Shown here: positions 17,553 to 61,675 of the stretch, piece by piece
Numbering within the stretch: the first letter of the stretch is position 1
Layout: each line of letters starts with the position of its first letter
Notes under the pieces: model-generated
What the model saw: the letters and a program-made list of their open reading frames with translations, nothing else
What the model was told of the DNA's origin: nothing
Database searches by the model: none
Virus record (IMG/VR): IMGVR_UViG_3300008111_000002
Span: 145,837-209,836 of that record
Direction: 5' to 3' (one strand)
Length of the DNA stretch: 64,000 nucleotides
Made by a program: the position numbers and the translations under genes

Positions 17553-17602
17553 TTTTGTCCGCTCTTTAATATTTACCATTAACTGCTCTGATAAATATCA
17601 GC

Positions 17603-18295: not shown

Positions 18296-18316
18296 CGAAA
18301 GTGATATAGAAAGAAA

Positions 18317-20501: not shown

Positions 20502-21408
20502 ATCAGTTCCTAACGGAAAAAATTTAGAGAAGATACAACTTTTACAAAATTTTTCTCAAGGAGTTCGTGCAGCAGGTGATACTGTACTTGATGTAGATCA
20601 CTATAGTGTAGTTGCGGCCGATGTTGGAGTAATACAAGGATGGATATCTGGAAAACCAGATGCGCAACACACCATATTAAGAAATAATGTAATAACTCAA
20701 CAAAAATTTCTTAATAGATTTGTTGTATGTGCTGATAGTAATTTATTTCTTTATGCTAATACAGATAATCCATTGCATTATCTAAGATATAGTTTTAATG
20801 ACGTTTTTCCTAATCAAGGAATATATTGTGATACAGAAATAGATCCTATAAGATGGATTAAAATCTCACAAAATCTTAATATACATCTTAAACCATATAG
20901 AGCATACGGCGATCATATTTTAATACTATTACAACGCAACGGTGGTTGGAGTATGTCTGGATATGATGTACAAGATTGGGCTATATCTGTTATTGATACT
21001 ATACGATCTTTTACAGATAGACCCATAGTAATTAGAGCACACCCTGGAGATAAAGCAGCTAGAACTTATCTTAATCCAGACAGTCCGCATTGCAGAATTA
21101 AATTTTCTAAACGTGTAAGATTAAGTAATAATACTAGACTAACTGATGATTTAGTAAATTGTTGGGCTGCTGTAAATTATAATTCAAGTCCAGCAGTCGG
21201 TGCAGCAATTGAAGGAATTCCAATTTTTGTAACTGATCCTATTAGAAGTCAAAGTGCGGAAATTGCTAATAGAGATTTATCACAAATTGAAAACCCAATG
21301 TTACCAGATAGGCAAAAGTGGGTTGAAAGATTATCAATGTTTCATTGGAATTTTAACGAATTAAGATCTGGTGAATGCTGGTCGCATATGAGAAAATTTA
21401 TTTCATAA
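20476..21408 (+). CDS. KpsS/KpsC-like glycosyltransferase-like protein, paralogue 3
   Basis: IVIRAHP, AVNYNSSPAVGAAIEGIPIF. Confidence 0.5.
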   Translation: MKTVAIYHKSVPNGKNLEKIQLLQNFSQGVRAAGDTVLDVDHYSVVAADVGVIQGWISGKPDAQHTILRNNVITQQKFLNRFVVCADSNLFLYANTDNPLHYLRYSFNDVFPNQGIYCDTEIDPIRWIKISQNLNIHLKPYRAYGDHILILLQRNGGWSMSGYDVQDWAISVIDTIRSFTDRPIVIRAHPGDKAARTYLNPDSPHCRIKFSKRVRLSNNTRLTDDLVNCWAAVNYNSSPAVGAAIEGIPIFVTDPIRSQSAEIANRDLSQIENPMLPDRQKWVERLSMFHWNFNELRSGECWSHMRKFIS

Positions 21409-22222
21409 ATTCTTTTAACTCAGCTAATTGAATATCATAATTATTAACATTAAAACTAAAATCAGATCTAGTATTAATTAAAATTTTATTAACTGGTTTA
21501 GGTCCCTGGGTTCTAATTATTGTTTTATTTAAATTAAAGACCGAGTTTATTTTACATAATAAATCATATTTGTTAATTTTAACATTGTTATCAACTAAAT
21601 GGTATATTCCCGTTATTGTCGGATTTTGAATATACTGATCAATACATTTTGCTAATTGAAGAGTAGTAATACCATTCCACCAAGCATTATCCCATCCTTG
21701 TAATTCTTCATTAATATTGTTGTAGATAAAATTAAACAATCCTGTACCGTTCTTTTTTAATTCAGGACCAATTATACTCATTCTAAATGTAATATCTTTA
21801 GAATTGTTAATTTCACCAAAGGATTTTGATTTACCATATGAATTGGTTTCTGTATGTAAATCTGTCTCTATGTAGTTTCCTTGTTTGCCGTCAAACACGC
21901 AATCAGTTGACAAATGAATTAATTTTGTTTTAGAATCTTTAATTTCGTTTTCAATGCAATGGGGAAGCCAGGAATTAATAATTGCTGCTCTATCCGGACG
22001 ATCAATGCTATCCTTGACTAACAGTCCTATGCAGTTAATTATGAAATCAAAATCGTTTTTGGATTCATTAAAAAAAGATTTAGTAATTACAGTGTTTTCA
22101 ATATCTAGTCCATAATCGGCATTATTTCTAGCTAAAGTTTGAACAGTATATCCTTGAGATGTAAGATATTTTTTAATAACATGACCCGCCATGCCATTAG
22201 AGCCAACTATTAAAACTTTCAT
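21398..22222 (-). CDS. RmlD-like NAD(P)-dependent sugar reductase (extended SDR)
   Basis: GSNGMAG, INCIG, HLSTDCVFDG..G.Y.E, YGKSK. Confidence 0.85.
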   Translation of the reverse strand: MKVLIVGSNGMAGHVIKKYLTSQGYTVQTLARNNADYGLDIENTVITKSFFNESKNDFDFIINCIGLLVKDSIDRPDRAAIINSWLPHCIENEIKDSKTKLIHLSTDCVFDGKQGNYIETDLHTETNSYGKSKSFGEINNSKDITFRMSIIGPELKKNGTGLFNFIYNNINEELQGWDNAWWNGITTLQLAKCIDQYIQNPTITGIYHLVDNNVKINKYDLLCKINSVFNLNKTIIRTQGPKPVNKILINTRSDFSFNVNNYDIQLAELKEFMK

Positions 22223-23199
22223 ATAAATTTACCTTTCTCAAGCATATCTTTTATTTGATCTTTGTCCATTATCTTTGTTTTAGAAGAAAATTCAGGATAT
22301 GGAAAATTTTTATGATCTTGGTATCTAGTTGCTAATGCTTGATTATAACCTGCAGGTAGTGTAACAAAGTAATGTTCATCATAACAGTATGTTAATTGAG
22401 ATTCGTGATGTGATATTAACATTTCGTCTAATTTTTCGCCAGGTCTCATTCCAGTTTCAATTACCTGAACTTTTCCATATACATCCATTAATACTTCTGC
22501 AAGATCTTTAATATAACAAGATGGCATATTCATAACGAATGTTTCACCACCTATGCTATCAATAGATGCTTTAAACAATAAAAATATAGCCTCTTCTAAT
22601 GTTAAAAAGAATCTAGTCATTTTCATGTCTGTTATTGTTAACGGCCCACCAGATTTTATTTGTTCAATAAAATAAGGAATAACCGATCCGCTGGATCCCA
22701 TTACGTTACCGCCTCTAATACAAACAAATTTTGTATAATCGTTAAGATCATTTGCTTGGATTATAATTTTTTCGCCAACAGCTTTTGTCATTCCGTAAAG
22801 ATTAATAGGTTCGACTGCTTTATCTGAACTTACATCAATTACTTTCTTTACACGATTTTCAATGGCAGCATTGACTATATTAGTAGTACCGTTGATATTT
22901 GTTTTAATTGTTTCCTGAACATTTTCTTCACACACGGGCACATGTTTTAATGCAGCAAGATGGAAAATGTAATCAACTCCTTTAGTTGCTTGTCTTACTG
23001 TATCATAGTCTCTAACATCTCCTATTACAAATTTTAACTTAGGATTGTTAAATTTTCTTTTCATCAATACTTGTTGTAATTCTCCACGAGAAAAACAAAT
23101 AATTTCTGCAACTTCGTACTTTTTAAGAAGTAAACTGATTAAAGTCTGCCCCCACGATCCTGTTGCCCCACTAACAAAAATTCTAGTTCCGTTAAACAT
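22219..23199 (-). CDS. UDP-GlcNAc 4,6-dehydratase/5-epimerase (PseB/WbjB/CapE family)
   Basis: GATGSWG, FSRGE, HLAALKHVP.CE, SSDKAVEPINLYGMTK, RGGNVMGSSGSVIP, GMRPGEKLDE. Confidence 0.9.
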   Translation of the reverse strand: MFNGTRIFVSGATGSWGQTLISLLLKKYEVAEIICFSRGELQQVLMKRKFNNPKLKFVIGDVRDYDTVRQATKGVDYIFHLAALKHVPVCEENVQETIKTNINGTTNIVNAAIENRVKKVIDVSSDKAVEPINLYGMTKAVGEKIIIQANDLNDYTKFVCIRGGNVMGSSGSVIPYFIEQIKSGGPLTITDMKMTRFFLTLEEAIFLLFKASIDSIGGETFVMNMPSCYIKDLAEVLMDVYGKVQVIETGMRPGEKLDEMLISHHESQLTYCYDEHYFVTLPAGYNQALATRYQDHKNFPYPEFSSKTKIMDKDQIKDMLEKGKFI

Positions 23200-23752
23200 T
23201 ATTGTTCCTTAAAATTTCAATCATTTCGCTGTCATTGTATAGTTTTATAGTATTAATAAATTCTTTAAATTCGTAATATGATATATTTTGATATTCGAGT
23301 GGGGGATTTATTTTAGCCGCCGGTATACGAATAAATGTAAGACCGAAATTGTTATTCATAGTGTATATTTCAAAATTAGTTTCTTTTATAAAATACATTA
23401 GTAATCTAAAAGAATCAGAACAAAATTTTGACGAGGTATGTTTTAGCGATGGAGGAACCATGTCATGCATAATAACCCATTTATTAGCATGGTTAACTGA
23501 ATTATTAAAATCTTTGAGAACATATTCGTAATCATGATTTGCATCAATAAAAATAATATCAAACTTTTTTGAATTATCTATACTAGAAAAATATTCATCA
23601 GTTGTACCGGTAAACAATGCATTGCCGTTAATATCAACTGAAAATTTTTCTTTACAGTTTATAGATCGAAAGTTTTCATTTCTAAAAACACCAAGCTCTA
23701 AATAGGTATATTTTTCTATTTCTGGAATGTTATTAATTATTGAACAAGACAC
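23192..23752 (-). CDS. class I SAM-dependent methyltransferase (Methyltransf_24-like)
   Basis: YLELGV, FDIIFIDANH.YE.V..D, IMHD. Confidence 0.75.
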   Translation of the reverse strand: MSCSIINNIPEIEKYTYLELGVFRNENFRSINCKEKFSVDINGNALFTGTTDEYFSSIDNSKKFDIIFIDANHDYEYVLKDFNNSVNHANKWVIMHDMVPPSLKHTSSKFCSDSFRLLMYFIKETNFEIYTMNNNFGLTFIRIPAAKINPPLEYQNISYYEFKEFINTIKLYNDSEMIEILRNNNV

Positions 23753-24420
23753 TATTTTGCTCCTTTAGTTTGGATCCAACCTCTAGCCTTAGATGGTTGT
23801 ATAACAGAATGAGAAAAATCTAAAAATGTGTCATTGGTAACTGTACCCAAATCATATAAATGAGAATAATTTTCTTCTGCAATTTTTCTTTTAATAAATG
23901 ATGCTGATCGTTTTGCTTGCGGATGCCATTCTGGATGAGATTGATCTACCCATTTTGCCCAAAAATGTGGTCTTGATAGATCGTAATTCCAACTCGAATG
24001 AGACTTGTTATATACTGCTTCTTCGGTAATATACATCGATATATTTGCTTCCTTCATTCTTATATAAAAATCATCATCTTCATAACCGCCACCGACATAT
24101 CTTTCATCTAACATACCAACTCTACGAAATAATTCTTTTTTAAATCCAAAAAATCCAAAGCGATAAAGTGCAACTAGCCCGTACCCTTGCTTAATAAGTT
24201 CTACAATTTTTTGTATTTGTTCTTGAGTTGGACGAACCTTATCACTAAGCACAATTACTATTTCAGATGGACATTGAGATATACAACTATTAACTAATTT
24301 TGAAAACGAAGGATACCCTGTACCATCAAAATAATTAATTTCTTCTGGGGCTGCGCCGGTCTGTATTTCTGGATATATCCAAGGTTTGTTAGATATTACA
24401 TAACAGTTATAATCTTTCAT
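23752..24420 (-). CDS. GT2-like glycosyltransferase
   Basis: FRRVGMLDERYVGGGYEDDDF motif. Confidence 0.65.
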   Translation of the reverse strand: MKDYNCYVISNKPWIYPEIQTGAAPEEINYFDGTGYPSFSKLVNSCISQCPSEIVIVLSDKVRPTQEQIQKIVELIKQGYGLVALYRFGFFGFKKELFRRVGMLDERYVGGGYEDDDFYIRMKEANISMYITEEAVYNKSHSSWNYDLSRPHFWAKWVDQSHPEWHPQAKRSASFIKRKIAEENYSHLYDLGTVTNDTFLDFSHSVIQPSKARGWIQTKGAK

Positions 24421-25103
24421 TGATAGTTATCCCAAAATGTTGTTCTTGTTAAACTCTTTTTTCCATCTTTTTTAATCAATGCAATTCCCATAACATGACT
24501 ATGAATTTCAATAATTACATGATGTTGATTTATAGCATTGTCTGCTGGAAGATAGGTATTTTTATATGTATCCACAAGTTTTTTTGCTGCATGTGGCTTT
24601 AATGCATATCCACAACATCCCGGCATTGAACTTTGAAAATATGGTTCTGCTTTTGGATCTCCTTGTGGATCTTCAAGATACTGCCGATACTTTTCAGTCT
24701 TAGTTGGATGCCCTAATGCTAAAACTAGTACGTCTGTCCAATCAATTGGAATAAATGGTCTTCTTAAAACAATATCATCTTCCCATATAATAATTGGTTC
24801 ATTTAATTCTACACATTTTTGCCATAGTCTATAATGACTATAAAAGCATCCTTTAACACCAGGGGAACTTCCTTTTAAATTAGGAACAGCATCGGGATCA
24901 ATTTCAATATCTGGACCTTTAATGCCAAACGGATGCCAAGTTCTATGTTCAAGTTCCATCATTTTCACAGCATCGGTGCCATATGTTCCTTCAAACAACT
25001 CAACAGGCATATTGTATTCTTCTAATTGTTTTTGTAGGGTTAGTGCTGTTTCAAAAGATGATTGTATTTTAGAAAGACAAATGATAAAACTTTTCATTTC
25101 CAA
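24417..25103 (-). CDS. GT25-family glycosyltransferase
   Basis: FIICL, GVKGCFYSHYRLW, IIIWEDD, GYALKP.AAKKL, PAD. Confidence 0.8.
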   Translation of the reverse strand: MEMKSFIICLSKIQSSFETALTLQKQLEEYNMPVELFEGTYGTDAVKMMELEHRTWHPFGIKGPDIEIDPDAVPNLKGSSPGVKGCFYSHYRLWQKCVELNEPIIIWEDDIVLRRPFIPIDWTDVLVLALGHPTKTEKYRQYLEDPQGDPKAEPYFQSSMPGCCGYALKPHAAKKLVDTYKNTYLPADNAINQHHVIIEIHSHVMGIALIKKDGKKSLTRTTFWDNYQ

Positions 25104-25903
25104 TAATCCTCTTTTCTTTTAATTCTTAGATCTTTTTGATGACTGCGGCCATACTGTTTTCTTTCGCCTTTGAGGTGATCTAAGTATCCACCCCATTCGC
25201 AGTTTATTAACGGGTGACCTTCTCCTGTAATAACACCTTGACTCCAGTTGTGCTGTATTAAAAAAGGAAATCTTTTACGTACATCATCAAATACATAACT
25301 GTCATGCCATTCATCTAAGTTAAAGATTCCCGCTTCGGCTTTGTCATACATCCATTGAAATTGATTTAAAAAATTTCTAGTCATTTCAGAACGTAAATTA
25401 AGAGAATATAAACCACATTCTGAAAATTTGTTGTCTCTACCTAGGTAACACAGATCTTTATCGATTGGTATTAGACGCTGTATCTCACTTAGACTAATCG
25501 GACTATGACAAACCATATCTGCGTCCATCCATATTAACACATCTGCATCACAATTTTTAGCACAATGGAAGATAGTATAAACTTTATGAGCAAATCTTAT
25601 TGCATCCCATTTGAAAGGTTTATGACTGTCTTTTCTAGCAGCCAATCTTGGAAAACTTGAGATGTCTCCACTGGCATGGGGAACATTTTTCCAACGTTCT
25701 TTGAAGGCTGTGAGTTCAGGAACACCGGTATCGAGATCAATTAATTCAACATTAGCGCCTTGCGGTACATATGGGTTAACTCTTTCGGGATACAGGTATA
25801 ACTTTACTTCTTTTGGCCAATTGATCAAAAAAGATTCGATCATTTTTTTAGCATAAGACTTATAACCATCTTCATTAAATGTTGTAACTACTGCATATTT
25901 CAT
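25094..25903 (-). CDS. GT-A glycosyltransferase-like protein
   Basis: VVTTF, RFAHKV, LIWMDAD DxD, SECG, EWHDSYVFD, DHLKG. Confidence 0.6.
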   Translation of the reverse strand: MKYAVVTTFNEDGYKSYAKKMIESFLINWPKEVKLYLYPERVNPYVPQGANVELIDLDTGVPELTAFKERWKNVPHASGDISSFPRLAARKDSHKPFKWDAIRFAHKVYTIFHCAKNCDADVLIWMDADMVCHSPISLSEIQRLIPIDKDLCYLGRDNKFSECGLYSLNLRSEMTRNFLNQFQWMYDKAEAGIFNLDEWHDSYVFDDVRKRFPFLIQHNWSQGVITGEGHPLINCEWGGYLDHLKGERKQYGRSHQKDLRIKRKEDYWK

Positions 25904-26301
25904 TAGTTTGCCTTTTTCCAAAAATTTATACTTTTATGATTACCCAAACTTTCATAATTATATTGCCAAAGATGTTTTAAGATCTTTTTACCCACCGGTT
26001 CACCATGTATTAAAATGATTCCTGCTCTATTAAGGCTGGCAACTGGTGTGAAATTACCAATCTCCCATAGACATGGCTCATCCACTACTAGTAAATTAAA
26101 TTCTGGTAATGTTTTTATATCAGTAAAGTTTAGTCTTGGTATTAAATTTTTACTTTTAATCTCTGGTCGTTGAGTGTCATAGACAAACACCGTGTTGAAT
26201 CCTTCAAGAAGATCTGGAATATTAATAAAATTACTACCTAATACCACAGCGGTATCACGTTTTGTAATAATTGGTTCTATACGTTTTAAAAATTTACTCA
26301 T
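25903..26301 (-). CDS. hypothetical protein (Rossmann-like?)
   Basis: 132-aa ORF coupled to the downstream GT gene. Confidence 0.5.
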   Translation of the reverse strand: MSKFLKRIEPIITKRDTAVVLGSNFINIPDLLEGFNTVFVYDTQRPEIKSKNLIPRLNFTDIKTLPEFNLLVVDEPCLWEIGNFTPVASLNRAGIILIHGEPVGKKILKHLWQYNYESLGNHKSINFWKKAN

Positions 26302-35282: not shown

Positions 35283-35358
35283 AAAAATAAAAGAATACAT
35301 TAAAAGAAAACGTAGATTAAAAGAACTACGTAAAAGAGATCCGTTTATCTATAAATGA
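35266..35358 (+). CDS. 30-aa basic peptide
   Basis: MFRLIEKIKEYIKRKRRLKELRKRDPFIYK; stop overlaps the next ATG (ATGA). Confidence 0.55.
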   Translation: MFRLIEKIKEYIKRKRRLKELRKRDPFIYK

Positions 35359-36824
35359 TTACTTGGGGGATTTCGGCTAACAGTCACAATGCTGCACTTG
35401 CAGTATTTGATGAAGATCATTTAATATTTGCCAGTGAATCGGAAAGATTTAGCAAAATTAAAAATGATCCGCATCTACATCACGATTTAATTGACTACGC
35501 AAAAACTATTGCGGGCGAACCTGATCTAGTATGTTGGTATGAAAAGCCGTGGCTGAAAACCATGCGTCAAATATTTGCAGGACAAGATTTTGAATACAAT
35601 AGTGTTAAAAAATATTTGTCTAGGTACAGCATTAATGCCCCTATAAAAACATTTAGACATCATCACAGTCATGCAGCAGCAGGTTATTATACCAGTACAT
35701 TTAAAGATGCATGTGTTATTGTTATTGATGCAATTGGAGAATTTGAAACTTTATCAATTTGGAAAGGTCAAGGTAAGAATTTAACAAAAGTATATTCACT
35801 TTCTTATCCTGACAGCATTGGTTTATTTTACTCTGCAATGACACAACGATGTGGTTTAAAACCCAATGAAGAAGAGTACATTCTTATGGGCATGGCCGCA
35901 TATGGTGACTATTCAGTGTTATTGAGAGACGTAACAAAAGATTTTATACATTTTCCAACTGATTATAAACATCCTGTGTTGTTTAAACAAAATTTACATA
36001 GAGGATGCAACTGGTGGAAACCTGAACTACAATCTCCTAAGCAGTTATTTGATATTGCAGCCGCAACACAGAAGATGTATGAAATTTGTTTTGTTAGAAT
36101 TTTACAGTTCGCACAACAACTTGTTGAAAGTGAAAATTTAGTGTTAATGGGAGGCTGTGCTTTAAATTGCTCAGCTAATTCAAAAATCTTTGATTACTTT
36201 AATGATGCATGGATCATGCCTGCACCAGGGGATAGCGGATCAGCCATTGGTGCAGTGTTAGCACACAAAGGAACACGTATTAAATGGACAGGACCGTATT
36301 TAGGTTACGATATTAGTCCACGAAAATTAAACAGAGAAATTGTTGAATACTTACAGATAAACAAAATATGTGGAGTAGCTAGAGGCCCTGCAGAATTTGG
36401 TCCACGTGCATTGGGCAATAGGAGCTTACTGGCAGATCCCAGGGATCCTAGTATAAAAGATCGTGTAAACGAAATAAAGAAAAGAGAAACATTTAGACCA
36501 TTTGCGCCTGCTATATTAGAAGAACATGCCAACAGGTATTTTGTAATGCCTACAAAGAAAAGTCCATATATGCAATACACTGCATATTGTCTACAACCAA
36601 ATTTATTTCCTTCTATTGTTCACAAAGACGGAACCAGTAGAGTTCAAACAGTTGGTCCTAATGATAATCCTAAATTTAGAGAACTGTTAGAAATGTGGTA
36701 TGCTAAAACAGGATGCCCTATGTTGTTGAATACCAGTTTGAATATAAAAGGCGAACCTATAGTAAACGACCTAGCAGATTCAATGACTTGGGCCAGTACC
36801 TATGGTTTACCTGTTTTTAATTAG
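35355..36824 (+). CDS. carbamoyltransferase (NodU/CmcH/TobZ family)
   Basis: SERFSKIKND, HHHSHAAAG, DAIGE, SIGLFY, GGCALN, GDSGSAIG, EFGPRALGNRS, FRPFAP, LNTSLN. Confidence 0.92.
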   Translation: MITWGISANSHNAALAVFDEDHLIFASESERFSKIKNDPHLHHDLIDYAKTIAGEPDLVCWYEKPWLKTMRQIFAGQDFEYNSVKKYLSRYSINAPIKTFRHHHSHAAAGYYTSTFKDACVIVIDAIGEFETLSIWKGQGKNLTKVYSLSYPDSIGLFYSAMTQRCGLKPNEEEYILMGMAAYGDYSVLLRDVTKDFIHFPTDYKHPVLFKQNLHRGCNWWKPELQSPKQLFDIAAATQKMYEICFVRILQFAQQLVESENLVLMGGCALNCSANSKIFDYFNDAWIMPAPGDSGSAIGAVLAHKGTRIKWTGPYLGYDISPRKLNREIVEYLQINKICGVARGPAEFGPRALGNRSLLADPRDPSIKDRVNEIKKRETFRPFAPAILEEHANRYFVMPTKKSPYMQYTAYCLQPNLFPSIVHKDGTSRVQTVGPNDNPKFRELLEMWYAKTGCPMLLNTSLNIKGEPIVNDLADSMTWASTYGLPVFN

Positions 36825-46371: not shown

Positions 46372-46626
46372 TTAATTTACAATTATAATGTTATTTGTTG
46401 CTAGTTGCTGTTTTGCTGATTGTAATGCTTTGTTAATTGCTTGTGCTTTTTGTTGTGCAGTGTCTGTAATATTGCAAATGTCCCCGGTAGCGTAAACTGC
46501 GCTGCGTTGTGTTATGTGACTGTTATTGCAGAAGCTTACTAAAATGCGTAGTGTTTTTAGCTTTTTGTTTTGTACAATTTTAGCAAAAGCTTTTTGTGCA
46601 AGTATTGCGTTAGCGTAAGTTTGCAT
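46372..46626 (-). CDS. hypothetical protein, compositionally biased (Q/A/K/N/I; no Glu, Pro or Trp)
   Basis: SD AAGGAG, own promoter and terminator. Confidence 0.6.
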   Translation of the reverse strand: MQTYANAILAQKAFAKIVQNKKLKTLRILVSFCNNSHITQRSAVYATGDICNITDTAQQKAQAINKALQSAKQQLATNNIIIVN

Positions 46627-46698
46627 TGTTGCGCTCCTTTTTGTTTAACAGTGTGTATATAATAGCACCAGCTGTCCAAAAAGTCAACCAAAATGTTC

Positions 46699-46725
46699 AA
46701 TAACCCGGCACTGCGCCGGGTTATT
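46699..46725. terminator. intrinsic terminator
   Basis: AATAACCCGGC-actgc-GCCGGGTTATT perfect 11-bp stem. Confidence 0.75.
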
Positions 46726-46733
46726 GCTAACAG

Positions 46734-47009
46734 TTACGCATACAAGTAATTGTCGGTGCAATAGTGTACAGTTTTATAAAACTTGCTTTGTGCGTCGGTG
46801 TACATGTGCATAATTGTGTCGCAAAGTTGGACTGCATTTTTATTTTGCATAAACTGTACAAGTGCTGCGTAAATTGTAACAATGTCGGTGTGTTGCTCGG
46901 CGCAGACAGTGTTGTCGGCGTTGACGTCGACAGTGCGTAAGTATTTTGCAATGTCGGCTTGCAAAAGTTGTACAATAATTGCTACGTCGGCGTTAGTAAC
47001 TTTTTGCAT
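46734..47009 (-). CDS. hypothetical protein, compositionally biased
   Basis: ATG after GGAG (MQKVTNADV...). Confidence 0.6.
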   Translation of the reverse strand: MQKVTNADVAIIVQLLQADIAKYLRTVDVNADNTVCAEQHTDIVTIYAALVQFMQNKNAVQLCDTIMHMYTDAQSKFYKTVHYCTDNYLYA

Positions 47010-47139: not shown

Positions 47140-47619
47140 TTACTCTGCAGTTACCACGCTGCCTAGTTTGATGTTAAACACAATGCTGTCGTCCCCCGCC
47201 CTAAACTCGCTTGCCAGTGCCGCTGCCTGCGCCTCATCCCTAGTAATCTCTACACCGTTGCGTGTGTAGCGTGGCGCTTTGCGTTCCGCAGTCTTGTCCA
47301 TTGTGCATCGCACATAGTATTCGCCCTTGTGTGCGATAATGTAGGGGAATACAGCCCACTCGCCCCATGGCAAACCTGCATTCTCTGCTGGCAGTTCGCC
47401 AGTTGCTCGCTTCTCAATCACTTCCTCAATCTCGTCGTATACCTGTCCGATGATTGCGGTAAACTCTGAACGCTTAACAATAGCGTCCTGTCCCTTGCGT
47501 ACCTTCAACATACGCTCCGTGACAAACTTGACTGGCTGTTGCTTCTTGCTCAACACCAAGTCCAACAGTTGTTGTGTGTTGTTGTCTGTGCCCTGAACTA
47601 CTAGTTGTGCTATTTGCAT
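47140..47619 (-). CDS. hypothetical protein
   Basis: 159 aa, SD AAGGAG, promoter. Confidence 0.65.
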   Translation of the reverse strand: MQIAQLVVQGTDNNTQQLLDLVLSKKQQPVKFVTERMLKVRKGQDAIVKRSEFTAIIGQVYDEIEEVIEKRATGELPAENAGLPWGEWAVFPYIIAHKGEYYVRCTMDKTAERKAPRYTRNGVEITRDEAQAAALASEFRAGDDSIVFNIKLGSVVTAE

Positions 47620-49306: not shown

Positions 49307-49666
49307 TTATACAACCTTGACCTTGCTATAGCCTGCGGACAACAATGCCAGAGCATCTTGTGCAGTTGCTGCCATAGTCACTACACGCTTACGGTTAATA
49401 TGGCCAGTAGTTGGATAGTAACGACCACCGCCATTGCCGATGGCATTGAAGTTACCACTACCAGGATTGAATCGATTATTGTTTCCCAGAATCCAACGAT
49501 TGAGGCGACCGTCCTTGATTGATCGAAGGTGATCACTGTTTTCGAGAATGTTCATTCTCTTAGACATATCCTCGCTCCAGTAACCAAGAGCGTTGGCCAC
49601 GTCTTTAGTATAGCACAGGGGATGAGCAGCGACGTATTCGCAAATCATCTGATTTTGACTTTTCAT
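49307..49666 (-). CDS. hypothetical protein, possible N-terminal winged HTH
   Basis: ICEYVAAHP..YTKDVANALG...SKRMNILE. Confidence 0.5.
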   Translation of the reverse strand: MKSQNQMICEYVAAHPLCYTKDVANALGYWSEDMSKRMNILENSDHLRSIKDGRLNRWILGNNNRFNPGSGNFNAIGNGGGRYYPTTGHINRKRVVTMAATAQDALALLSAGYSKVKVV

Positions 49667-49732
49667 GGGTTCTCCATAAAGTGTTGTTTAGTTCAAACAG
49701 TATAACAGGGGGTTGCCCCCCTGTCAACCAAT

Positions 49733-50086
49733 TTATGCCTCTGCAAATGCCTCCAACGCTGCCTGTGCCGCACCGTCCAGCATTACGCCATCTTGTGCTT
49801 TAATCTTGTCTGCAGTTACCTTTATGCGGTATGCGTCCATCTCTGCAGTCTTTGCTTCCATAGCAGGCCACACTACGTCTTGCGGGTTAAGGTAAGCACC
49901 TGTGTAGTCTACCTTGTCCTCTTTCAGTGTAATCTCGCCTGCCTTAATGCCTTCAAACACCATGCCCCATGTAGGCTGTTGCGGACGGCCAGTAGGGCCA
50001 AACAGTTCCACTGCCTTTGCCTGCAGTTTCTCTGTTGCAATTTCATTCAAGCGACGGAGAAAGTAATTGCGTTGTTCCTGTTCCAT
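49733..50086 (-). CDS. hypothetical protein
   Basis: 117 aa, SD AGGAG, hairpin promoter. Confidence 0.65.
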   Translation of the reverse strand: MEQEQRNYFLRRLNEIATEKLQAKAVELFGPTGRPQQPTWGMVFEGIKAGEITLKEDKVDYTGAYLNPQDVVWPAMEAKTAEMDAYRIKVTADKIKAQDGVMLDGAAQAALEAFAEA

Positions 50087-50108
50087 AATACGCTCCTAAA
50101 AAGTCTGT

Positions 50109-50160
50109 CACTGCAAAATTGCAGTGTGTGTATATTAACACACACTGCCCAATCTGTCAA
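50109..50160 (-). promoter_or_regulatory. promoter with -10 inside a 10-bp inverted repeat, plus leader hairpin
   Basis: CACTGC-aaaatt-GCAGTGTGTG-tatattaa-CACACACTGC...TGTCAA. Confidence 0.85.
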
Positions 50161-50165
50161 CCGTT

Positions 50166-50477
50166 TTATGCCTCAAAATTTTCTACAATCATAATACGTC
50201 CAGCCAGCAAGTCTTCTACCAGTTGCACTGCTCGCCGCTCTGTGCCGCCAATGTGCCAGTCATAGTGCCCCATGGGAGTGCCATACTCTTTCCAGTCGTA
50301 AATCGTTGCTACTGTGCCGTCGCTAAACTCAATGCACCACTCCTGCGTGGTCTTGTCGCCACCGCCCATCCCCTCCCCCAGCAAGTCCTGCAGCTTTGCA
50401 AAGGTGGTTCCTACATAGCCCTGCAGATGTGTGCCGTTGAACTTTTCTGCAAAGTAATCGTAAACTCGTGCTTCCAT
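50166..50477 (-). CDS. conserved-looking phage hypothetical protein
   Basis: LQGY..T..KL..LLG....DKT..EW.IEF.DG.VATIYDWK.....WHIGG. Confidence 0.65.
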   Translation of the reverse strand: MEARVYDYFAEKFNGTHLQGYVGTTFAKLQDLLGEGMGGGDKTTQEWCIEFSDGTVATIYDWKEYGTPMGHYDWHIGGTERRAVQLVEDLLAGRIMIVENFEA

Positions 50478-50495
50478 GTTGCGCTCCTAGTATGT

Positions 50496-50547
50496 CACTG
50501 CGTTATTGCAGTGTGTGTATAGTAACACACACTGCCCAAAATGTCAA
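50496..50547 (-). promoter_or_regulatory. promoter with -10 inside a 10-bp inverted repeat, plus leader hairpin
   Basis: CACTGC-gttatt-GCAGTGTGTG-tatagtaa-CACACACTGC...TGTCAA. Confidence 0.85.
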
Positions 50548-50550
50548 GTG

Positions 50551-50766
50551 TTAAATTGTGCTGTACTTTCTGTATTCCTTGCCGCCCACGTTGCTGTACC
50601 ACAGCCCGTTAGTTTTTTTGTAATAACCCTGCTTGTACCAGTTTTTAATCTGTGTTGCGTGTTGCTGTCTGCCCTGCTCTGCAATAGCTTGTTCCAACGT
50701 CATTGTAGCACCTGCTGCGTCTTGTGCTGCCTGCTGTGCTTGTTGTTGTGCGTGTAGTGCTAGCAT
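50551..50766 (-). CDS. hypothetical protein (no Pro)
   Basis: SD AAGGAG; Gln/Ala-rich. Confidence 0.6.
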   Translation of the reverse strand: MLALHAQQQAQQAAQDAAGATMTLEQAIAEQGRQQHATQIKNWYKQGYYKKTNGLWYSNVGGKEYRKYSTI

Positions 50767-50783
50767 AGCTTGCTCCTTAGTTG

Positions 50784-50835
50784 CACTGCGTTATTGCAGT
50801 GTGTGTATATTAACACACACTGCCCAAAATGTCAA
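50784..50835 (-). promoter_or_regulatory. promoter with -10 inside a 10-bp inverted repeat, plus leader hairpin
   Basis: CACTGC-gttatt-GCAGTGTGTG-tatattaa-CACACACTGC...TGTCAA. Confidence 0.85.
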
Positions 50836-50844
50836 CCAAAATGT

Positions 50845-51168
50845 TTATACTTCCATGCTTGCAAGTTCGTCTTCTTGCATACCCTGCTCTGTAAAGCGCA
50901 CACCAAACCCTAGTGCATCACTAATAGCACTTTCAAATGCACTGTCTGTGTATATGTCCCATGTGCTGTTGTGCGTTACATTAACCATAACGCTTACATT
51001 GTCGTCATAAGCATTTGTCACAATGCTAATGCCTGTCACACGCACTTGCCTGTCAGCCTCGCAGCCCCACAAGCCGTCGCCAGCTGTCCAAACAGTAAAG
51101 TCGCAGTCAAAGTCTTGTGCAGTGTAGTCGCCGTCAACCTCAAACCGTGTAAGTGTAAGTTTTTGCAT
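50845..51168 (-). CDS. acidic hypothetical protein (no Pro)
   Basis: SD AGGAG; 107 aa. Confidence 0.65.
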   Translation of the reverse strand: MQKLTLTRFEVDGDYTAQDFDCDFTVWTAGDGLWGCEADRQVRVTGISIVTNAYDDNVSVMVNVTHNSTWDIYTDSAFESAISDALGFGVRFTEQGMQEDELASMEV

Positions 51169-51242
51169 TGTGTGCTCCTGTGTGTCACTGCGTTAGTGCA
51201 GTGTGTATATAATAGCACCAGCTGTTCAAAATGTCAACCAAA

Positions 51243-51401
51243 TTATTCTGCGTAACCGTCTTCTTCCCAGCCCTCGTAGGTGGCATTAACTCCCGCAGAG
51301 TTTACATCAGTCATCCCAGCAATCTCGTCTGCTGCTTCTGCTGTGTCTGCTTCAACCTGTAAAGTATATGTTACAGTCTGTGTGTAATAAAATTTAGGCA
51401 T
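51243..51401 (-). CDS. small hypothetical protein
   Basis: ATG after AGGAGCGAG (MPKFYY...). Confidence 0.55.
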   Translation of the reverse strand: MPKFYYTQTVTYTLQVEADTAEAADEIAGMTDVNSAGVNATYEGWEEDGYAE

Positions 51402-51422: not shown

Positions 51423-51462
51423 ACAGCGTGTGTATAGTAACACACGCTGTCCAAACTGTCAA
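51423..51462 (-). promoter_or_regulatory. promoter with a covaried inverted repeat around -10
   Basis: ACAGCGTGTG-tatagtaa-CACACGCTGT...TGTCAA. Confidence 0.85.
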
Positions 51463-51467
51463 CCAAT

Positions 51468-51686
51468 TTAGGCAGGCTCTCCTGAGCGACCTTGATGAAC
51501 TCGGGCAGGTCCGCCGGCAGGCAGGTGGAGTTCGAGATCAGCTTCCATGACCACGTAATAGGCTTTGAGAACTTCTAGATTGTATTCATCGGGATTGGCC
51601 TTGATCGCCATCAGCTGCTCTGAAAAGGACTGATCTTTGGCATAGGCTTGAATTCTAATGATTTCGCTGGCTTTGGAAATGTCCAT
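51468..51686 (-). CDS. hypothetical protein
   Basis: SD AAGGAG, promoter. Confidence 0.55.
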   Translation of the reverse strand: MDISKASEIIRIQAYAKDQSFSEQLMAIKANPDEYNLEVLKAYYVVMEADLELHLPAGGPARVHQGRSGEPA

Positions 51687-53940: not shown

Positions 53941-54513
53941 TTATTTGAAGCCCATGACCATGTAACGGTTAAAGCCCCAGTCAGGATATTGAAATCGTTT
54001 AGTACCTGTGAACAGTTGTTCCTTCAAAGGCCATGCAGCAGCAAAAGCCTCGTCTGACTCATAGCTGGCCACGTGATCTTCATGAGGCATATCGTTCCCT
54101 TGCAGCACTGTGAATGTATTCTCAGGGATGTTGTCGAACCACTGACGTGACTCTATGTGCTCTACGCTGGTGTTGATTATAATACTAGGCTGATGTCCCA
54201 ATGCCCACCAGTTGATGTTGTTGACGTCGTGCGTAACAGCTGAGAACTCTCCCTGCCAGTGCCACAGACGATTAACGTGTACCGCGATAGATTCGCATTC
54301 AGGATCTATGTCCCAACTGCGAACATGCTGGATGGGGATTCTACTTTGTGTGCGTAGGATGAAATTGGTAAGTGCATACCAGCCTGCGAAGATCTCTATC
54401 CTATGGCCCTGCAGCGGGGCCTGTATGTCATTGATGGAGAGTACCTGACTCAGCTTCTCAGCCAGCCAAATCTTACTGCCAATTTGACCGGATGAGAAGC
54501 TGTCCCAATTCAT
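53941..54513 (-). CDS. class I SAM-dependent methyltransferase-like protein
   Basis: GQI.SK.WL, IFAGWY, SWDIDP, INTSVEH. Confidence 0.6.
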   Translation of the reverse strand: MNWDSFSSGQIGSKIWLAEKLSQVLSINDIQAPLQGHRIEIFAGWYALTNFILRTQSRIPIQHVRSWDIDPECESIAVHVNRLWHWQGEFSAVTHDVNNINWWALGHQPSIIINTSVEHIESRQWFDNIPENTFTVLQGNDMPHEDHVASYESDEAFAAAWPLKEQLFTGTKRFQYPDWGFNRYMVMGFK

Positions 54514-55712
54514 TAGGCCTTCTCGTCGTAGATAACAGTCTGACCAAAGGGTGCTTCGTTATTACTGCCCTTGACAATGAACAAGGTATCGCAGTAGTCT
54601 TCATCACCCCAACCACCGCAGGGGTAGCCGTCTGTAAACATAATGAACTTCTTGGGCTGGATGTCGTTCTCTTTCATAAACTGCCAGTTGGCTTCAAAGT
54701 CCGTACCACCACCGCCTTGGAGATCATAAGTCAACAGTTCGTCGCCGTTGTCCTGCGTAATCTTCTGCGGATTGTAAACGTCTGTGTCAAAGCACCAGAT
54801 GTGAATGTTGTAGTCTGAATATTGATCCATGATGCCCTTGACTTCACTCAAGAACACCTTAGCATCAGCATCGCCAATTGAACCACTCATATCCAATGCA
54901 ATGGCCACGTCAATGGTCTCATCGTTCTTCATGCCTGGAAGGATAGCGCCACTGTGCATTGACTTACGATTAGGGCGAGTAAAGGAGTAGTCGTTGCGGA
55001 TGATGCTTTGAATGTTCATACGGATCAACTCACGCCAGTTCATCTTAGGCTCAGTGAGGTCTTTGATCAAACGCTGAATGCCCAACGGAGTCTTACCTGC
55101 ACCTGCGGCCGCGGCACTCTGAACCATAGCCTGCTTGATCTCATCGCGAATAGCCTGTGCTTCTTCTTTGGTAAGAACTGGAGCACCCTTGCCATCCTTA
55201 CCATCTTTGCCTGCACCCTGACCTTCGTGCTCTTGCTCGTTGATATGCTGGTCCAACAATTCGCCCAACTGATCCAGACTAATGGTCTTGACGTTCTTCA
55301 TCAGGTCGTCGTAGATCTCTTCCCAGGCCATGCCGCGATACTTGTTGTCTTGGCAAATCTTAACTTCAGTGATACGCTCGCCAATGCGGTCGTCTACAAG
55401 GATCTGGTTCACTGCGAAGTCTTGTGCGATGTTAGACATCTGACGATCACGCGAACCTACACGACCAAAGTGATCAAACACACAATGGCAAATCTCATGT
55501 GCGAACAAGAACTCTAGTTTCTTAACGCTGAGCTTCTCAACGAACTTGGTGTTGTAGTAGAAGTTGCGTCCGTCAGTTGCGGCTGTAGGGCACCAGTCGT
55601 CTGCACACTTGATCTGCATACGAGTTGCCATGTTACCAAAGAACGGTTGCTTCAGCAGAAGCCCTACACGAGCGGTAATGAGCTTTTCAACGATTGCGGG
55701 ATCTTCTTTCAT
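54513..55712 (-). CDS. DUF2201-type protein: N-terminal HExxH metallopeptidase-like domain plus C-terminal vWA domain
   Basis: TAATDG, AHEICH; MIDAS DMSGS, GGGGTDF, FTDG. Confidence 0.88.
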   Translation of the reverse strand: MKEDPAIVEKLITARVGLLLKQPFFGNMATRMQIKCADDWCPTAATDGRNFYYNTKFVEKLSVKKLEFLFAHEICHCVFDHFGRVGSRDRQMSNIAQDFAVNQILVDDRIGERITEVKICQDNKYRGMAWEEIYDDLMKNVKTISLDQLGELLDQHINEQEHEGQGAGKDGKDGKGAPVLTKEEAQAIRDEIKQAMVQSAAAAGAGKTPLGIQRLIKDLTEPKMNWRELIRMNIQSIIRNDYSFTRPNRKSMHSGAILPGMKNDETIDVAIALDMSGSIGDADAKVFLSEVKGIMDQYSDYNIHIWCFDTDVYNPQKITQDNGDELLTYDLQGGGGTDFEANWQFMKENDIQPKKFIMFTDGYPCGGWGDEDYCDTLFIVKGSNNEAPFGQTVIYDEKA

Positions 55713-55826
55713 ATGGGCTCCTTTGTCTAAGTATGTATATTATATGGCCTAGTGCCTATTCTGTCAACCAAAAAAGGTGAGTGAGGGACCCTGAACAAGT
55801 CCCCCACTCTAGCCATGGTGGAGGTC

Positions 55827-56903
55827 TTAATTCTCCATGGCCTTCAAAACATACTTACCGTATTTCTTGTGGAACTCATCAAAGTTCTTCATCTTTGTTG
55901 CGTCCAACGGCAAGTTGTAGTTAGTAAGGGCAGTCTTAGCACCCATCACAACCAACTCTGTTGGGAAGTTATCCATCATGTAGCGGAAGAAGCAGTCCGC
56001 CTGACTGTCCCAATTAGTAGCCTTCTTGTCTGCTTGATCTTTGAGCTCGTAGCACAAGCTCACAGTCAAGGAATACATGGCTGACACTTCCTTAATCTGC
56101 AGGTCCTTAACCTTGCCGCTAAGGATGTCGGGAGCCTTAGGCAGTTTACCAGCAATCTTACGATGTGCCATAAACTTAACAGCCAAGCCGTCACCAATAG
56201 CACCTGCAACCAAGTCAGTGAGCGTGTCAGTGTCAGTGTCATCGTCCTGCAGGAGATCGCTGACGAACACCCATGAACGAGGAGTTGCAAAAGCCTTAGA
56301 GCTGGACTTGGGATCAAAGTCATACAAGTCCTGCTTGGCAAAGCCTACATAACCAACAACCTCAGGATGGATCTTGTTAGCAGTAGCCCACTCTTGGAAA
56401 TCGTCAAAGTCAACTTTGGCTTCCAAGTGCAGGAAGCGGTTGGCCAACGGAGCAGGCATACGATAGGTAACACCCTTGTCGCCATCGCGGTTACCAGCCG
56501 CTACAATGTCCACGCCCTTGGGCAGGATGTATTGTCCTACACGACGGTTCAGAACCAACTGGTAGGCGGCCGCTTGGACTGCGGGAGGAGCGGAGTTGAG
56601 CTCGTCCAAGAAGATGATTGCACGGCTGTCTGGGTCAGTGGGCAATTCTGCTGGGGGTGCCCAAACCATTGTGCCTTGTTCTGCGTTGTAATAAGGGATA
56701 CCTTTGATGTCTGTAGGTTCCCAGAGTGGTAGACGAATATCAATTACTTCTCTCCCCTCGGAGTCGCCAATCTGCTTGACGATGTCACTCTTACCAATAC
56801 CGGGCGGGCCCCACAGGAACACCGGACGGCGCTTTTGAATTGCTTTTTGAATTGCCTTCTTGGCCTTCTTAGGACCAACCTGGCGAATAGAATTATCAGA
56901 CAT
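55827..56903 (-). CDS. MoxR-like AAA+ ATPase
   Basis: GPPGIGKS, FLDELN, AAGNR, LANRF, TPRSW. Confidence 0.9.
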   Translation of the reverse strand: MSDNSIRQVGPKKAKKAIQKAIQKRRPVFLWGPPGIGKSDIVKQIGDSEGREVIDIRLPLWEPTDIKGIPYYNAEQGTMVWAPPAELPTDPDSRAIIFLDELNSAPPAVQAAAYQLVLNRRVGQYILPKGVDIVAAGNRDGDKGVTYRMPAPLANRFLHLEAKVDFDDFQEWATANKIHPEVVGYVGFAKQDLYDFDPKSSSKAFATPRSWVFVSDLLQDDDTDTDTLTDLVAGAIGDGLAVKFMAHRKIAGKLPKAPDILSGKVKDLQIKEVSAMYSLTVSLCYELKDQADKKATNWDSQADCFFRYMMDNFPTELVVMGAKTALTNYNLPLDATKMKNFDEFHKKYGKYVLKAMEN

Positions 56904-61508: not shown

Positions 61509-61595
61509 TGGTGCCCGGAGCCGGAATCGAACCGGCACGCTGTCGCCAGCGAGAGATTTTAAGTCTCTTGTGTCTACCTATTTCACCATCCGGGC
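61509..61595 (-). tRNA. tRNA-Leu (anticodon UAA)
   Basis: GCCCGGATGGTGAAATAGGTAGACAC...AGAGA-CT-TAA-AA-TCTCT, long variable arm, GGTTCGATTCC, 3' CCA. Confidence 0.95.
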
Positions 61596-61598
61596 ATT

Positions 61599-61675
61599 TG
61601 GTGGGCCCCCCGGGACTTGAACCCGGACTCAACGGATTATGAGTCCGCTGCTTTAACCAATTAAGCTAAAGGCCC
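61599..61675 (-). tRNA. tRNA with CAU anticodon, probably Ile2 (lysidine type)
   Basis: GGGCCTTTAGC...GCGGA-CT-CAT-AA-TCCGT...GGTTCAAGTCC...CCA; no initiator C1:A72 or GGG:CCC stem; C4 and overall resemblance to Ile2. Confidence 0.85.

Follow-up and report, generated by a model that had tools for sequence, protein, structure and literature searches.

We identified a block of five early genes, designated A to E, on the minus strand of an uncultured jumbo myovirus of 210 kb (IMG/VR record IMGVR_UViG_3300008111_000002), whose source looks like fresh water judging only from the organism names on two co-binned contigs. The stretch of DNA that was analysed, hereafter the window, is 64,000 nucleotides long, and all positions refer to it. 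Each gene of the block has its own consensus sigma-70 promoter, and the core of the block is an 839-nt run in which the sense (minus) strand contains no UC or CC (together YC), which is equal to the absence of GA and GG (together GR) from the template (+) strand. The features of the region, including a second group of depleted genes, are as follows:

50441..51279 (-), run with no UC/CC in the sense strand, covering the 3' end of gene A, genes B and C, three promoters and the first 37 nt of gene D
51468..51686 (-), gene 'up', 72 aa, same promoter type but YC-rich (37 YC against 25 expected); it is absent from near-identical strains and so is a recent insert that marks the abrupt upstream edge
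51434..51462 (-), promoter of gene A (TTGACA-17-TACTAT), where the purged block starts, directly after the stop codon of the unpurged gene 'up'
51243..51401 (-), gene A, 52 aa, 4 YC against 8.4 expected (one Pro codon)
51209..51237 (-), promoter of gene B (TTGACA-17-TATTAT)
51186..51203 (-), 5'-UTR hairpin of the B mRNA (CACUGC-loop-GCAGUG, -9.1 kcal/mol)
50845..51168 (-), gene B, 107 aa, acidic (pI 4.1), 0 YC against 20.9 expected; the conserved core of the island in all relatives, with a confidently predicted fold that has no PDB match
50807..50835 (-), promoter of gene C (TTGACA-17-TAATAT), with the -10 box flanked by an 11-bp inverted repeat
50784..50801 (-), 5'-UTR hairpin of the C mRNA
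50551..50766 (-), gene C, 71 aa, 0 YC against 12.9 expected
50519..50547 (-), promoter of gene D (TTGACA-17-TACTAT)
50496..50513 (-), 5'-UTR hairpin of the D mRNA
50166..50477 (-), gene D, 103 aa, 8 YC against 20.6 expected
50132..50160 (-), promoter of gene E (TTGACA-17-TAATAT)
50109..50126 (-), 5'-UTR hairpin of the E mRNA (-10 kcal/mol)
49733..50086 (-), gene E, 117 aa, 15 YC against 29.7 expected
49706..49723 (-), G-run/C-run hairpin at the end of the A-E block, overlapping the next promoter and holding the first cluster of YC after gene E
47140..47619 (-), gene, 159 aa, partly depleted of YC (17 against 40)
46734..47009 (-), gene, 91 aa, 12 YC against 34 and 9 GR against 23, with the same 5'-UTR hairpin as B-E
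46372..46626 (-), gene of a second class, 84 aa, with a transcript depleted of both YC (4 against 24) and GA/GG (5 against 18)

The preliminary description of this region had reported an 839-nt run without GA or GG among on the order of 150 G residues of the template strand, and this observation was confirmed. The run holds 168 G, with 0 GA, 0 GG, 69 GC and 98 GT, whereas TC (49) and CC (52) are common on the same strand, so that the gap is strand-specific. Of all 16 dinucleotides, only GA and GG have giant gaps in the window (859 and 873 nt, at the same place), and the longest gap for any other dinucleotide is 302 nt. With the local GR frequency of 0.081, an 839-nt gap has a log10 P of about -31, or about -26 after allowing for every start on both strands. 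We also applied a codon-aware null, which had been proposed beforehand as a test of the run, that keeps the amino-acid sequence and draws codons from 12 neighbouring early genes. It gave 0 YC against 20.9 +/- 3.8 for gene B and 0 against 12.9 +/- 3.1 for gene C, with D and E at about half or less of expectation and the flanking genes F and 'up' normal. Chance and base composition are therefore rejected. The further clean stretches at 50061-50274 and 49713-49828 were also found, and genes B and C lack Pro and use only AGY codons for Ser, as had been described.

Two points of the preliminary description needed correction. The bias does not fade outward on both sides but on the downstream side only (D 0.32, E 0.50, F 1.05 observed/expected), while the upstream edge is abrupt because the next gene, 'up', is YC-rich at 1.25. 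In addition, the promoters had been described as cruciform-type, but they are TTGACA-17-TAnnAT promoters with a palindrome around the -10 box and a 5'-UTR hairpin. This motif occurs at every unit, 16 such promoters were found on the minus strand of 45-62 kb, and the largest ORF in the window is the 1118-aa tail sheath, so N4-type hairpin promoters read by a giant virion RNA polymerase are rejected.

The purge is selected. Gene B has 0 YC in nine distinct genes of 70-99% nucleotide identity: ACC is used for 0 of 112 Thr, GCC for 0 of 70 Ala, GTC for 0 of 78 Val, ATC for 0 of 53 Ile, TTC for 0 of 42 Phe and TCN for 0 of 46 Ser, and 97 of 97 C-initial codons follow a purine. The family has 4 Pro in 12,850 residues of 120 cluster representatives. 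C is held at 20%, against 22.5% in neighbouring genes, and is moved into AC and GC contexts, which are enriched 1.6-1.8 fold. Thr third positions go to A rather than T (ACA 77 against ACT 21), and Ser is kept as AGY. Neutral deamination decay, which would deplete TC/CC but with loss of C and gain of T at former sites, is thus rejected. The unit of the purge is the dinucleotide and not the codon, since UTRs, promoters read through from upstream and codon junctions are all clean. The cost appears to be per site: runs of 839 to 1422 nt have zero sites, and in gene E many synonymous YC present in its homologues are gone, those that remain sitting mostly at conserved Pro codons and the rest at a few Leu/Arg codons or codon junctions.

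The pattern is gene by gene. Among the relatives examined (designated here by L numbers), unrelated genes downstream of B are also at 0 in L005, L007 and L008, only B is clean in L013 and L020, and genes with the same promoter type are normal. The homologue of the second-class gene 46372-46626 lies just upstream of B in L005, L007 and L008. This second class, which forms whole arrays in relatives, lacks GA/GG in the transcript as well as YC, and its proteins have no Asp, Glu, Gly, Pro or Trp. In the relatives, 500-nt windows hold 0 GR and there is no Shine-Dalgarno (SD) sequence, whereas the window gene 46372-46626 is only depleted and keeps an AGGAG SD. In 46372-47009 as a whole, 11 of 19 YC and 11 of 25 GR fall in YCGR, seen by eye mostly as YC-GAC at Asp codons of gene 46734-47009. 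No island lacking GR alone was seen.

In the array of relative L034, the transcribed parts are cleaner (YC 12 against 560 expected; GR 11 against about 260 in units 5-11) than the unconstrained spacers (about 0.1 observed/expected outside a G/C-run element). The purge does not stop at the terminators of this array, since the spacers beyond strong terminators are also purged outside a conserved G/C-run element, only three to five times less strictly, and the -35 boxes avoid the GA of TTGACA. Features of RNA stability travel with the purge. The 5'-terminal hairpin occurs only on B, C, D, E and 46734-47009, all of them depleted, and most leftover YC/GR in the relatives' arrays lie in G-run/C-run elements, one pair of which is predicted to base-pair. 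The first YC after B in L013 and L020 lie in the 3' arm of an inverted repeat seen by eye.

We found no near relative among cultured phages by megablast, and gene B had no tblastn match in 50,697 phage records. The closest terminase is that of Pseudomonas phage PA5oct at 54%, and the first 50 kb of that phage has no comparable gap, the longest being 187 nt. Structure models of B and of a 184-aa family purged on both strands were usable (pLDDT 92 and 78), but neither had a PDB fold match, B had no PDB sequence match, and there was no Pfam or PHROG match. Most early proteins have no family match, and an Rfam search of 42-64 kb returned only two tRNAs. Literature searches for a description of the phenomenon found none.

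Our preferred explanation, which we hold tentatively, is that these messages must stay intact while an activity is present that reads single-stranded RNA two bases at a time and disables a molecule with a single hit. In this view, host RNA polymerase transcribes each gene from its own promoter with the + strand as template, and long-running selection has removed every UC and CC from the core transcripts. The activity could be an endoribonuclease or an RNA-modifying toxin of a host defence, or the phage's own host-shutoff enzyme. The purge would let a first wave of proteins be made regardless, chief among them the conserved acidic protein B, which may be the counter-measure, and neighbouring early genes of normal composition would be expressed once the activity is neutralised. 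The loss of GA and GG from the second class concerns the dinucleotide class read by CmdT-type mRNA ADP-ribosyltransferases, and CmdT provides a precedent, since it modifies GA in single-stranded RNA and blocks translation (bioRxiv 10.1101/2024.02.24.581662). The gene-by-gene pattern fits a local consequence such as mRNA survival. The analysis itself establishes the purge, its strand, its conservation under selection, its gene-by-gene pattern and its stronger grip on transcribed segments, whereas we only infer that RNA rather than DNA is the substrate, that one hit suffices, and who makes the activity.

Several findings weigh against this reading. No enzyme with YC specificity on bacterial mRNA is known to us, and none was identified in the window. 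YC and GR are reverse complements, which hints at a DNA-level reader acting on either strand, and the purged spacers and -35 boxes of the L034 array are explained by an RNA model only through read-through or shared ancestry of the copies. It remains possible, though no more than tentative, that bacteria or these phages themselves have a so far unknown activity that disables single-stranded RNA at UC/CC, and a second one at GA/GG, and that a widespread clade of freshwater jumbo phages answers with naturally target-free early genes, going as far as proteins of 166-184 residues built from 15 amino acids and genes translated without an SD sequence.

The best-surviving alternative, although unlikely, is Rho evasion. 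Each primary binding site of the Rho hexamer binds a 5'-YC dinucleotide (PMC12360218), so that a transcript with no UC or CC gives Rho nothing to load on and early transcription by host polymerase could not be terminated prematurely. The missing pair is exactly the ligand of Rho, Rho is present in every infection, which would explain steady selection, and it reads unstructured RNA, while leftover YC are concentrated in G-run/C-run elements that are at least partly predicted to pair. However, Rho binds cooperatively to many YC over 60-80 nt, so a few sites should be harmless, a lowered density should be enough, and a C-poor, G-rich composition would be expected. Instead, an absolute zero is kept in nine lineages and over up to 1422 nt, amino acids are sacrificed to achieve it, and C is not lowered. 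The genes are 160-350 nt long, each with its own promoter and strong SD, and Rho should hardly matter within them. Nor does Rho explain the loss of GA/GG from the same transcripts in the second class.

Somewhat less likely is an attack on DNA exposed by transcription, in which a single-strand-specific enzyme acting at YC, such as an APOBEC-like deaminase, a T4 endonuclease-IV-like dC-specific nuclease or a DarT-like ADP-ribosyltransferase, hits the displaced non-template strand of very heavily transcribed early genes, and both strands are purged where both become exposed. A single reader would explain both YC and GR and the order in which they are lost, with the sense strand first. It also fits the purge of spacers and -35 boxes in the AT-rich L034 array, with tolerance only for G/C-rich elements that would stay paired, and TC and CC are the classic contexts of ssDNA deaminases. 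On the other hand, early genes with equally good consensus promoters are not purged, including a YC-rich insert in the middle of the block, DNA damage would be costly wherever it fell, there is no C-to-T decay signature, and unconstrained spacers are less clean than ORFs. No YC-specific anti-phage ssDNA enzyme of this kind is known to us.

The interpretation favoured in the preliminary description was that the phage modifies G in GA/GG contexts and keeps the templates read first by host RNA polymerase free of modifiable G. Taken as a whole, that interpretation is partly supported, in that the strand specificity and significance of the run hold and one of its listed alternatives, evasion of a YC-specific RNase including a phage shutoff nuclease that spares its own mRNAs, is close to our own. 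The modification model, in which the modified base could be a DpdA-type 7-deazaguanine or another, gains no support here and seems doubtful, although it is not excluded. Its premise is sound, as the DpdA of CAjan modifies GA and GGC (PMC7544227) and phage iggy modifies GA (PMC10484667), and the strand that lacks GR is the template. The window also carries a sugar-nucleotide and glycosyltransferase cluster, a carbamoyltransferase and a weak T4 gp1-like dNMP kinase hit, so some DNA modification is conceivable. However, tblastn with CAjan DpdA, FolE, QueD, QueC and QueE found nothing in 767 kb from this phage and its relatives, and Pfam annotation of the window plus 10 kb on each side, about 84 of the 210 kb of this genome, showed no TGT or Que family. 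GA is absent from the template, but so is every GG whatever follows it and not only GGC. Moreover, 7-substituted deazaguanines lie in the major groove and are not known to block polymerases, and the -35 boxes of the window (TTGACA) keep a GA on the non-template strand. The model gives no reason to purge the non-template strand in the second class at the price of the SD sequence and five amino acids, and most early genes are not purged.

A very unlikely possibility is that the templates are oxidation-proof. The 5' G of GG and GA is the most easily oxidised guanine context (GG > GA > GC, GT), which matches the missing sites exactly, and their removal from the template strand, which would matter first, would keep lesions acquired by virions in sunlit water out of the first-read templates, with nearby G-runs as sinks. 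Conserved G-run/C-run elements do sit between purged units in L034 and L036. In the window, however, G/C runs of four or more are spread over the whole early region and not only beside purged genes, the template is pyrimidine-rich with no avoidance of UV dipyrimidine sites, the benefit per site seems too small to justify losing whole amino acids, and spacers are less clean than ORFs. A by-product of codon or tRNA preference or of selection for unstructured mRNA is close to refuted by the clean junctions and UTRs. The B, C and D mRNAs do fold slightly less stably than synonymous shuffles (z = +1.2, +2.7 and +1.3; control gene 0.08), but this effect is small, and dropping GA/GG as well as UC/CC gains nothing for folding. 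Restriction-site or CRISPR PAM avoidance, which would deplete both strands independently of the direction of transcription, is rejected by the strand specificity.

A complete, strand-specific, gene-by-gene purge of a dinucleotide in phage early genes appears to be undescribed, although target-site avoidance itself is familiar for restriction sites and for CpG or UA in animal viruses. If our reading is right, the purged genes act as a footprint that points to an unknown RNA- or ssDNA-directed activity with UC/CC specificity, marks out the proteins a phage must make first (candidate counter-defence proteins such as B), and gives a simple sequence signature for finding both in metagenomes. The second class shows that natural proteins can be forced into a 15-letter alphabet by a constraint on the nucleic acid, which bears on protein evolution and design. 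Even if Rho turns out to be the reader, this would be a new anti-termination strategy encoded purely in sequence composition.

Among known systems, the bacterial defence CmdTAC also disables mRNA at a dinucleotide, with CmdT ADP-ribosylating adenine in GA of single-stranded mRNA, including the GA of SD sequences (bioRxiv 10.1101/2024.02.24.581662). However, the mRNA of the run reported here keeps 49 GA and 52 GG, as well as AGGAG SDs, so CmdT-type attack cannot explain it. CmdT is triggered late, by capsid protein, and the authors of the CmdTAC study, which describes the one known dinucleotide-reading mRNA defence, judged escape by site loss implausible. Rho utilisation sites involve the same two dinucleotides on nascent single-stranded RNA, but many sites act together, complete absence is more than evasion requires, and there is no link to GA/GG. 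DpdA systems recognise a G followed by a purine, yet in the text searched the phages that carry them are not reported to have purged regions. APOBEC3 footprints in papilloma- and polyomaviruses affect the same dinucleotides in a strand-aware manner, but they are modest and come with C-to-T decay. In the MazF system, engineered mRNAs without the 3-nt ACA motif go on being translated while an endoribonuclease destroys the rest ('single-protein production'), whereas here the design is natural, conserved and at dinucleotide level. Animal RNA viruses avoid UA/UU and CpG, motifs at which the immune factors RNase L and ZAP, respectively, read single-stranded RNA, but those depletions are partial and genome-wide, while here the purge is absolute, confined to chosen early genes of a DNA phage and strong enough to remove amino acids. 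Finally, in the first-injected region of Autographiviridae, motif avoidance against Type I restriction (PMC12455610) likewise requires only the early part of the genome to lack the target until counter-defence genes are expressed, but that target is a specific double-stranded motif, whereas here it is a strand-specific dinucleotide that follows individual genes.

Within window positions 50441-51279 we counted 168 G on the + strand, none of which is followed by A or G (69 GC and 98 GT), whereas TC (49) and CC (52) are common on the same strand. The preliminary description had reported that every G in this interval is followed by a pyrimidine, and that observation was confirmed. All genes here lie on the minus strand, and hence the + strand is the template and the finding is equivalent to mRNAs that contain no UC and no CC (together, YC; GA and GG are referred to as GR). 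Of the 16 dinucleotides, only GA and GG have giant gaps in the 64-kb window (859 and 873 nt, at the same place), and the longest gap for any other dinucleotide is 302 nt. The chance of an 839-nt gap is about 1e-26 after allowing for all starts. Based on a null model that keeps each protein and draws codons from neighbouring early genes, gene B is expected to have 20.9 +/- 3.8 YC and gene C 12.9 +/- 3.1, but both have none. Genes D and E are also low (8 against 20.6 and 15 against 29.7 expected, respectively), and the flanking genes are normal. C is not depleted (20% against 22.5% nearby), but is always preceded by a purine, with AC and GC enriched 1.6-1.8 fold.

The window is the last 64 kb of a 209,836-bp metagenomic viral contig from a T4-like jumbo myovirus, which carries a tail sheath, a T4-type terminase, gp13- and gp15-like proteins, a DnaB helicase and a sugar/glycosyltransferase cluster. 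Its terminase is 54% identical to that of Pseudomonas phage PA5oct, and no close cultured relative was found. We also found a sharp G+C step, since the structural and replication part (1-40000) is about 35% G+C and the block of small minus-strand early genes (42000-64000) is about 47%. Features of the window outside the purged genes are as follows.

593-1291: a weak match to T4 gp1-type deoxynucleoside monophosphate kinase, a gene class often found in phages that use non-canonical nucleotides.
16689-25921 and 35355-36824: a cluster of glycosyltransferases (GT8, GT25, GT7C-like), sugar-nucleotide epimerase/dehydratases and a methyltransferase, plus a NodU/CmcH-type carbamoyltransferase next to DnaB; the target could be virion proteins, the host surface or DNA.
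49307-49666: a MarR-like gene at the end of the purged block.
51468-51686 (minus strand): a YC-rich 72-aa gene with the same promoter type, inserted between purged units.
54513-56903: a MoxR-type AAA ATPase followed by a DUF2201 metallopeptidase-like/VWA protein among the early genes, each with its own consensus promoter.
61509-61675: tRNA-Leu(UAA) and tRNA-Met genes inside the early block.

Many of the early genes carry their own consensus promoter, TTGACA-17-TAnnAT, and 16 such promoters lie on the minus strand between 45 and 62 kb, against one elsewhere on that strand. These are host sigma-70 promoters and not N4-type hairpin promoters. The cruciform appearance noted in the preliminary description comes from an 11-bp inverted repeat around the -10 box and from a 6-7 bp hairpin at the start of the 5' UTR (-9 to -10 kcal/mol). 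The repeat (GCAGTGTGTGT / ACACACACTGC) is perfect and brackets the -10 box of several early promoters (50807-50835, 50519-50547 and 50132-50160), and it looks like an operator. The clean run covers the end of gene A, genes B (107 aa) and C (71 aa), three promoters and the start of gene D. No terminator was seen between these units by eye, and so everything in the run is probably transcribed. The block ends at a G6/C6 hairpin after gene E, and starts abruptly after the stop codon of the YC-rich gene 51468-51686. This gene is absent or replaced in near-identical strains (relatives L029 and L031), and so is a recent insert.

The purge is selected and conserved. Gene B has 254 relatives at the 90% cluster level in metagenomes and no known domain. 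In 25 viral contigs, B homologues of 57-85% amino-acid identity have 0 to 3 YC where about 22 are expected, whereas distant homologues (44-45%) are normal or only partly depleted (15 against 16 expected; 8 against 21). In nine distinct clean B genes (70-99% nucleotide identity), not one ACC, GCC, GTC, ATC, TTC, CTC or TCN codon is used, and all 97 codons that begin with C follow a codon that ends in a purine. In addition, 120 cluster representatives hold 4 prolines in 12,850 residues. Third positions move to A rather than T and Ser is kept through AGY, which is avoidance and not C-to-T decay. In three of the related contigs, L005, L007 and L008, unrelated genes downstream of B are also at zero, with runs up to 1272 nt, whereas in relatives L013 and L020 only B with its promoter and 3' UTR is clean, and the first YC afterwards lie in the 3' arm of an inverted repeat seen by eye. 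Compared with its homologues, window gene E has lost many of its synonymous YC, and most of those left lie at conserved Pro codons. Each site therefore carries a cost that is weighed against protein function.

We also found a second class of genes. Window gene 46372-46626 is depleted of both YC (4 against 24 expected) and GR (5 against 18) in the sense strand, and a homologue of it lies just upstream of B in L005, L007 and L008. Gene 46734-47009 is depleted of both in part. Across 46372-47009, 11 of 19 remaining YC and 11 of 25 remaining GR coincide as YCGR, a self-complementary motif, and by eye, mainly in gene 46734-47009, most of these are Asp codons GAC preceded by a codon ending in YC. 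In one relative (L022/L034), a tandem array of about 13 monocistronic units of roughly 590 nt (L034:4200-12500) is almost free of YC over 8 kb, and of both YC and GR over 5.5 kb. Each unit consists of a TTGCAT-17-TATAAT promoter, a 5' hairpin, a small ORF and a strong two-way terminator. A 184-aa protein family from that array is encoded without any YC or GR in relatives L036, L037 and L039, with 0 of about 54 and 0 of about 51 per 500 nt. These proteins, of 166-184 aa (L022:8997-9551, L036:9944-10507, L039:9992-10507 and L034:7000-12500), have no Asp, Glu, Gly, Pro or Trp and a pI of about 10, and are 58-71% identical to the L022 copy across six contigs. The L022 copy, the one gene that was read through, has no Shine-Dalgarno sequence. 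The family still gives a usable AlphaFold model (pLDDT 78), which returned no PDB fold match. We saw no island that lacks GR alone, so YC avoidance comes first.

In the L034 array, the transcribed parts (promoter start site to terminator) have 12 YC where 560 are expected, and in units 5-11 they have 11 GR where about 260 are expected, with most of the leftovers in the spacers between terminator and next promoter. A reading of this pattern as a purge bounded by transcription units needs correction, however. Of the spacer sites, 51 of 61 YC and 47 of 61 GR belong to a conserved G-run/C-run element, in which GCCCCA is predicted to pair with UGGGGC, and outside that element the spacers are still at about 0.1 of expectation. 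The array's -35 boxes are TTGCAT-like and avoid the GA of TTGACA, although all copies share ancestry. Even so, spacers with no coding constraint are three to five times less clean than ORFs, which places the centre of selection on what is transcribed. In the window, the 5' hairpin occurs only on B, C, D, E and 46734-47009, which are all depleted genes.

Four facts narrow the field of possible mechanisms. The unit is a dinucleotide on one strand, which excludes codon usage, restriction sites and PAMs. The purge is absolute and is paid for in amino acids, so one site is costly, and this favours a single-hit event (a cut, an adduct or a lesion) over a cooperative binder. It goes gene by gene among neighbours with the same promoter type, so the consequence is local to a gene's expression. 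It is strongest in transcribed sequence, and the leftovers in the relatives' arrays are concentrated in G-run/C-run elements that are at least partly predicted to pair. The reading that fits best, which we put forward tentatively, is that these transcripts are stripped of the targets of an activity that reads single-stranded RNA at UC/CC, and for the second class at GA/GG as well. While the purge and its conservation under selection come directly from the sequences, the activity itself is inferred, and the choice of RNA over DNA as its substrate rests on indirect arguments. The activity, whether of the host or the phage's own shutoff enzyme, would be present at the start of infection and would later be neutralised, which would explain why the other early genes can afford normal composition. 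A bacterial defence that disables mRNA at a dinucleotide exists (CmdT, at GA), and there are HEPN RNases with dinucleotide preferences. Steady, perfect conservation leans slightly towards something met in every infection. Protein B is acidic (pI 4.1), which is more typical of an inhibitor than of an RNase, although such a role is inference only.

Among the alternatives, Rho reads exactly 5'-YC and is the obvious specialist's guess. However, it binds many sites cooperatively, these genes are short with their own promoters and strong Shine-Dalgarno sequences, C is not lowered, and Rho says nothing about GA/GG. A YC-specific enzyme acting on DNA exposed by transcription would explain with one reader why the second avoided pair is the reverse complement of the first, and why spacers are purged. 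On the other hand, damage to DNA should matter everywhere, equally strong promoters drive unpurged genes, and there is no decay signature. The leading inference of the preliminary description was that the phage modifies G in GA/GG contexts and that the first-transcribed templates are purged of such sites. The preliminary interpretation was partly supported, in that the observation, its strand specificity and its significance hold, but this leading inference gained no support, although it is not excluded: its premise, that such phage modification of G occurs, is true, but no pathway genes appear in the 84 kb examined (about 40% of the genome was annotated) or in relatives, and it cannot account for the purge of the non-template strand. 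An oxidation-chemistry reading, in which the 5' G of GG and GA is the most oxidisable context, matches the motif but little else. The effect on mRNA folding is a minor side effect.

Literature searches found no description of this phenomenon. In kind it is target-motif avoidance, of which known examples include restriction sites, leading-region motifs, CpG and UA in animal viruses, and ACA-less mRNAs. Compared with these, the new features are the dinucleotide scale in a phage, the completeness of the purge, its strand and gene specificity, its conservation across a large environmental clade, and the extreme second class with its 15-letter proteins.
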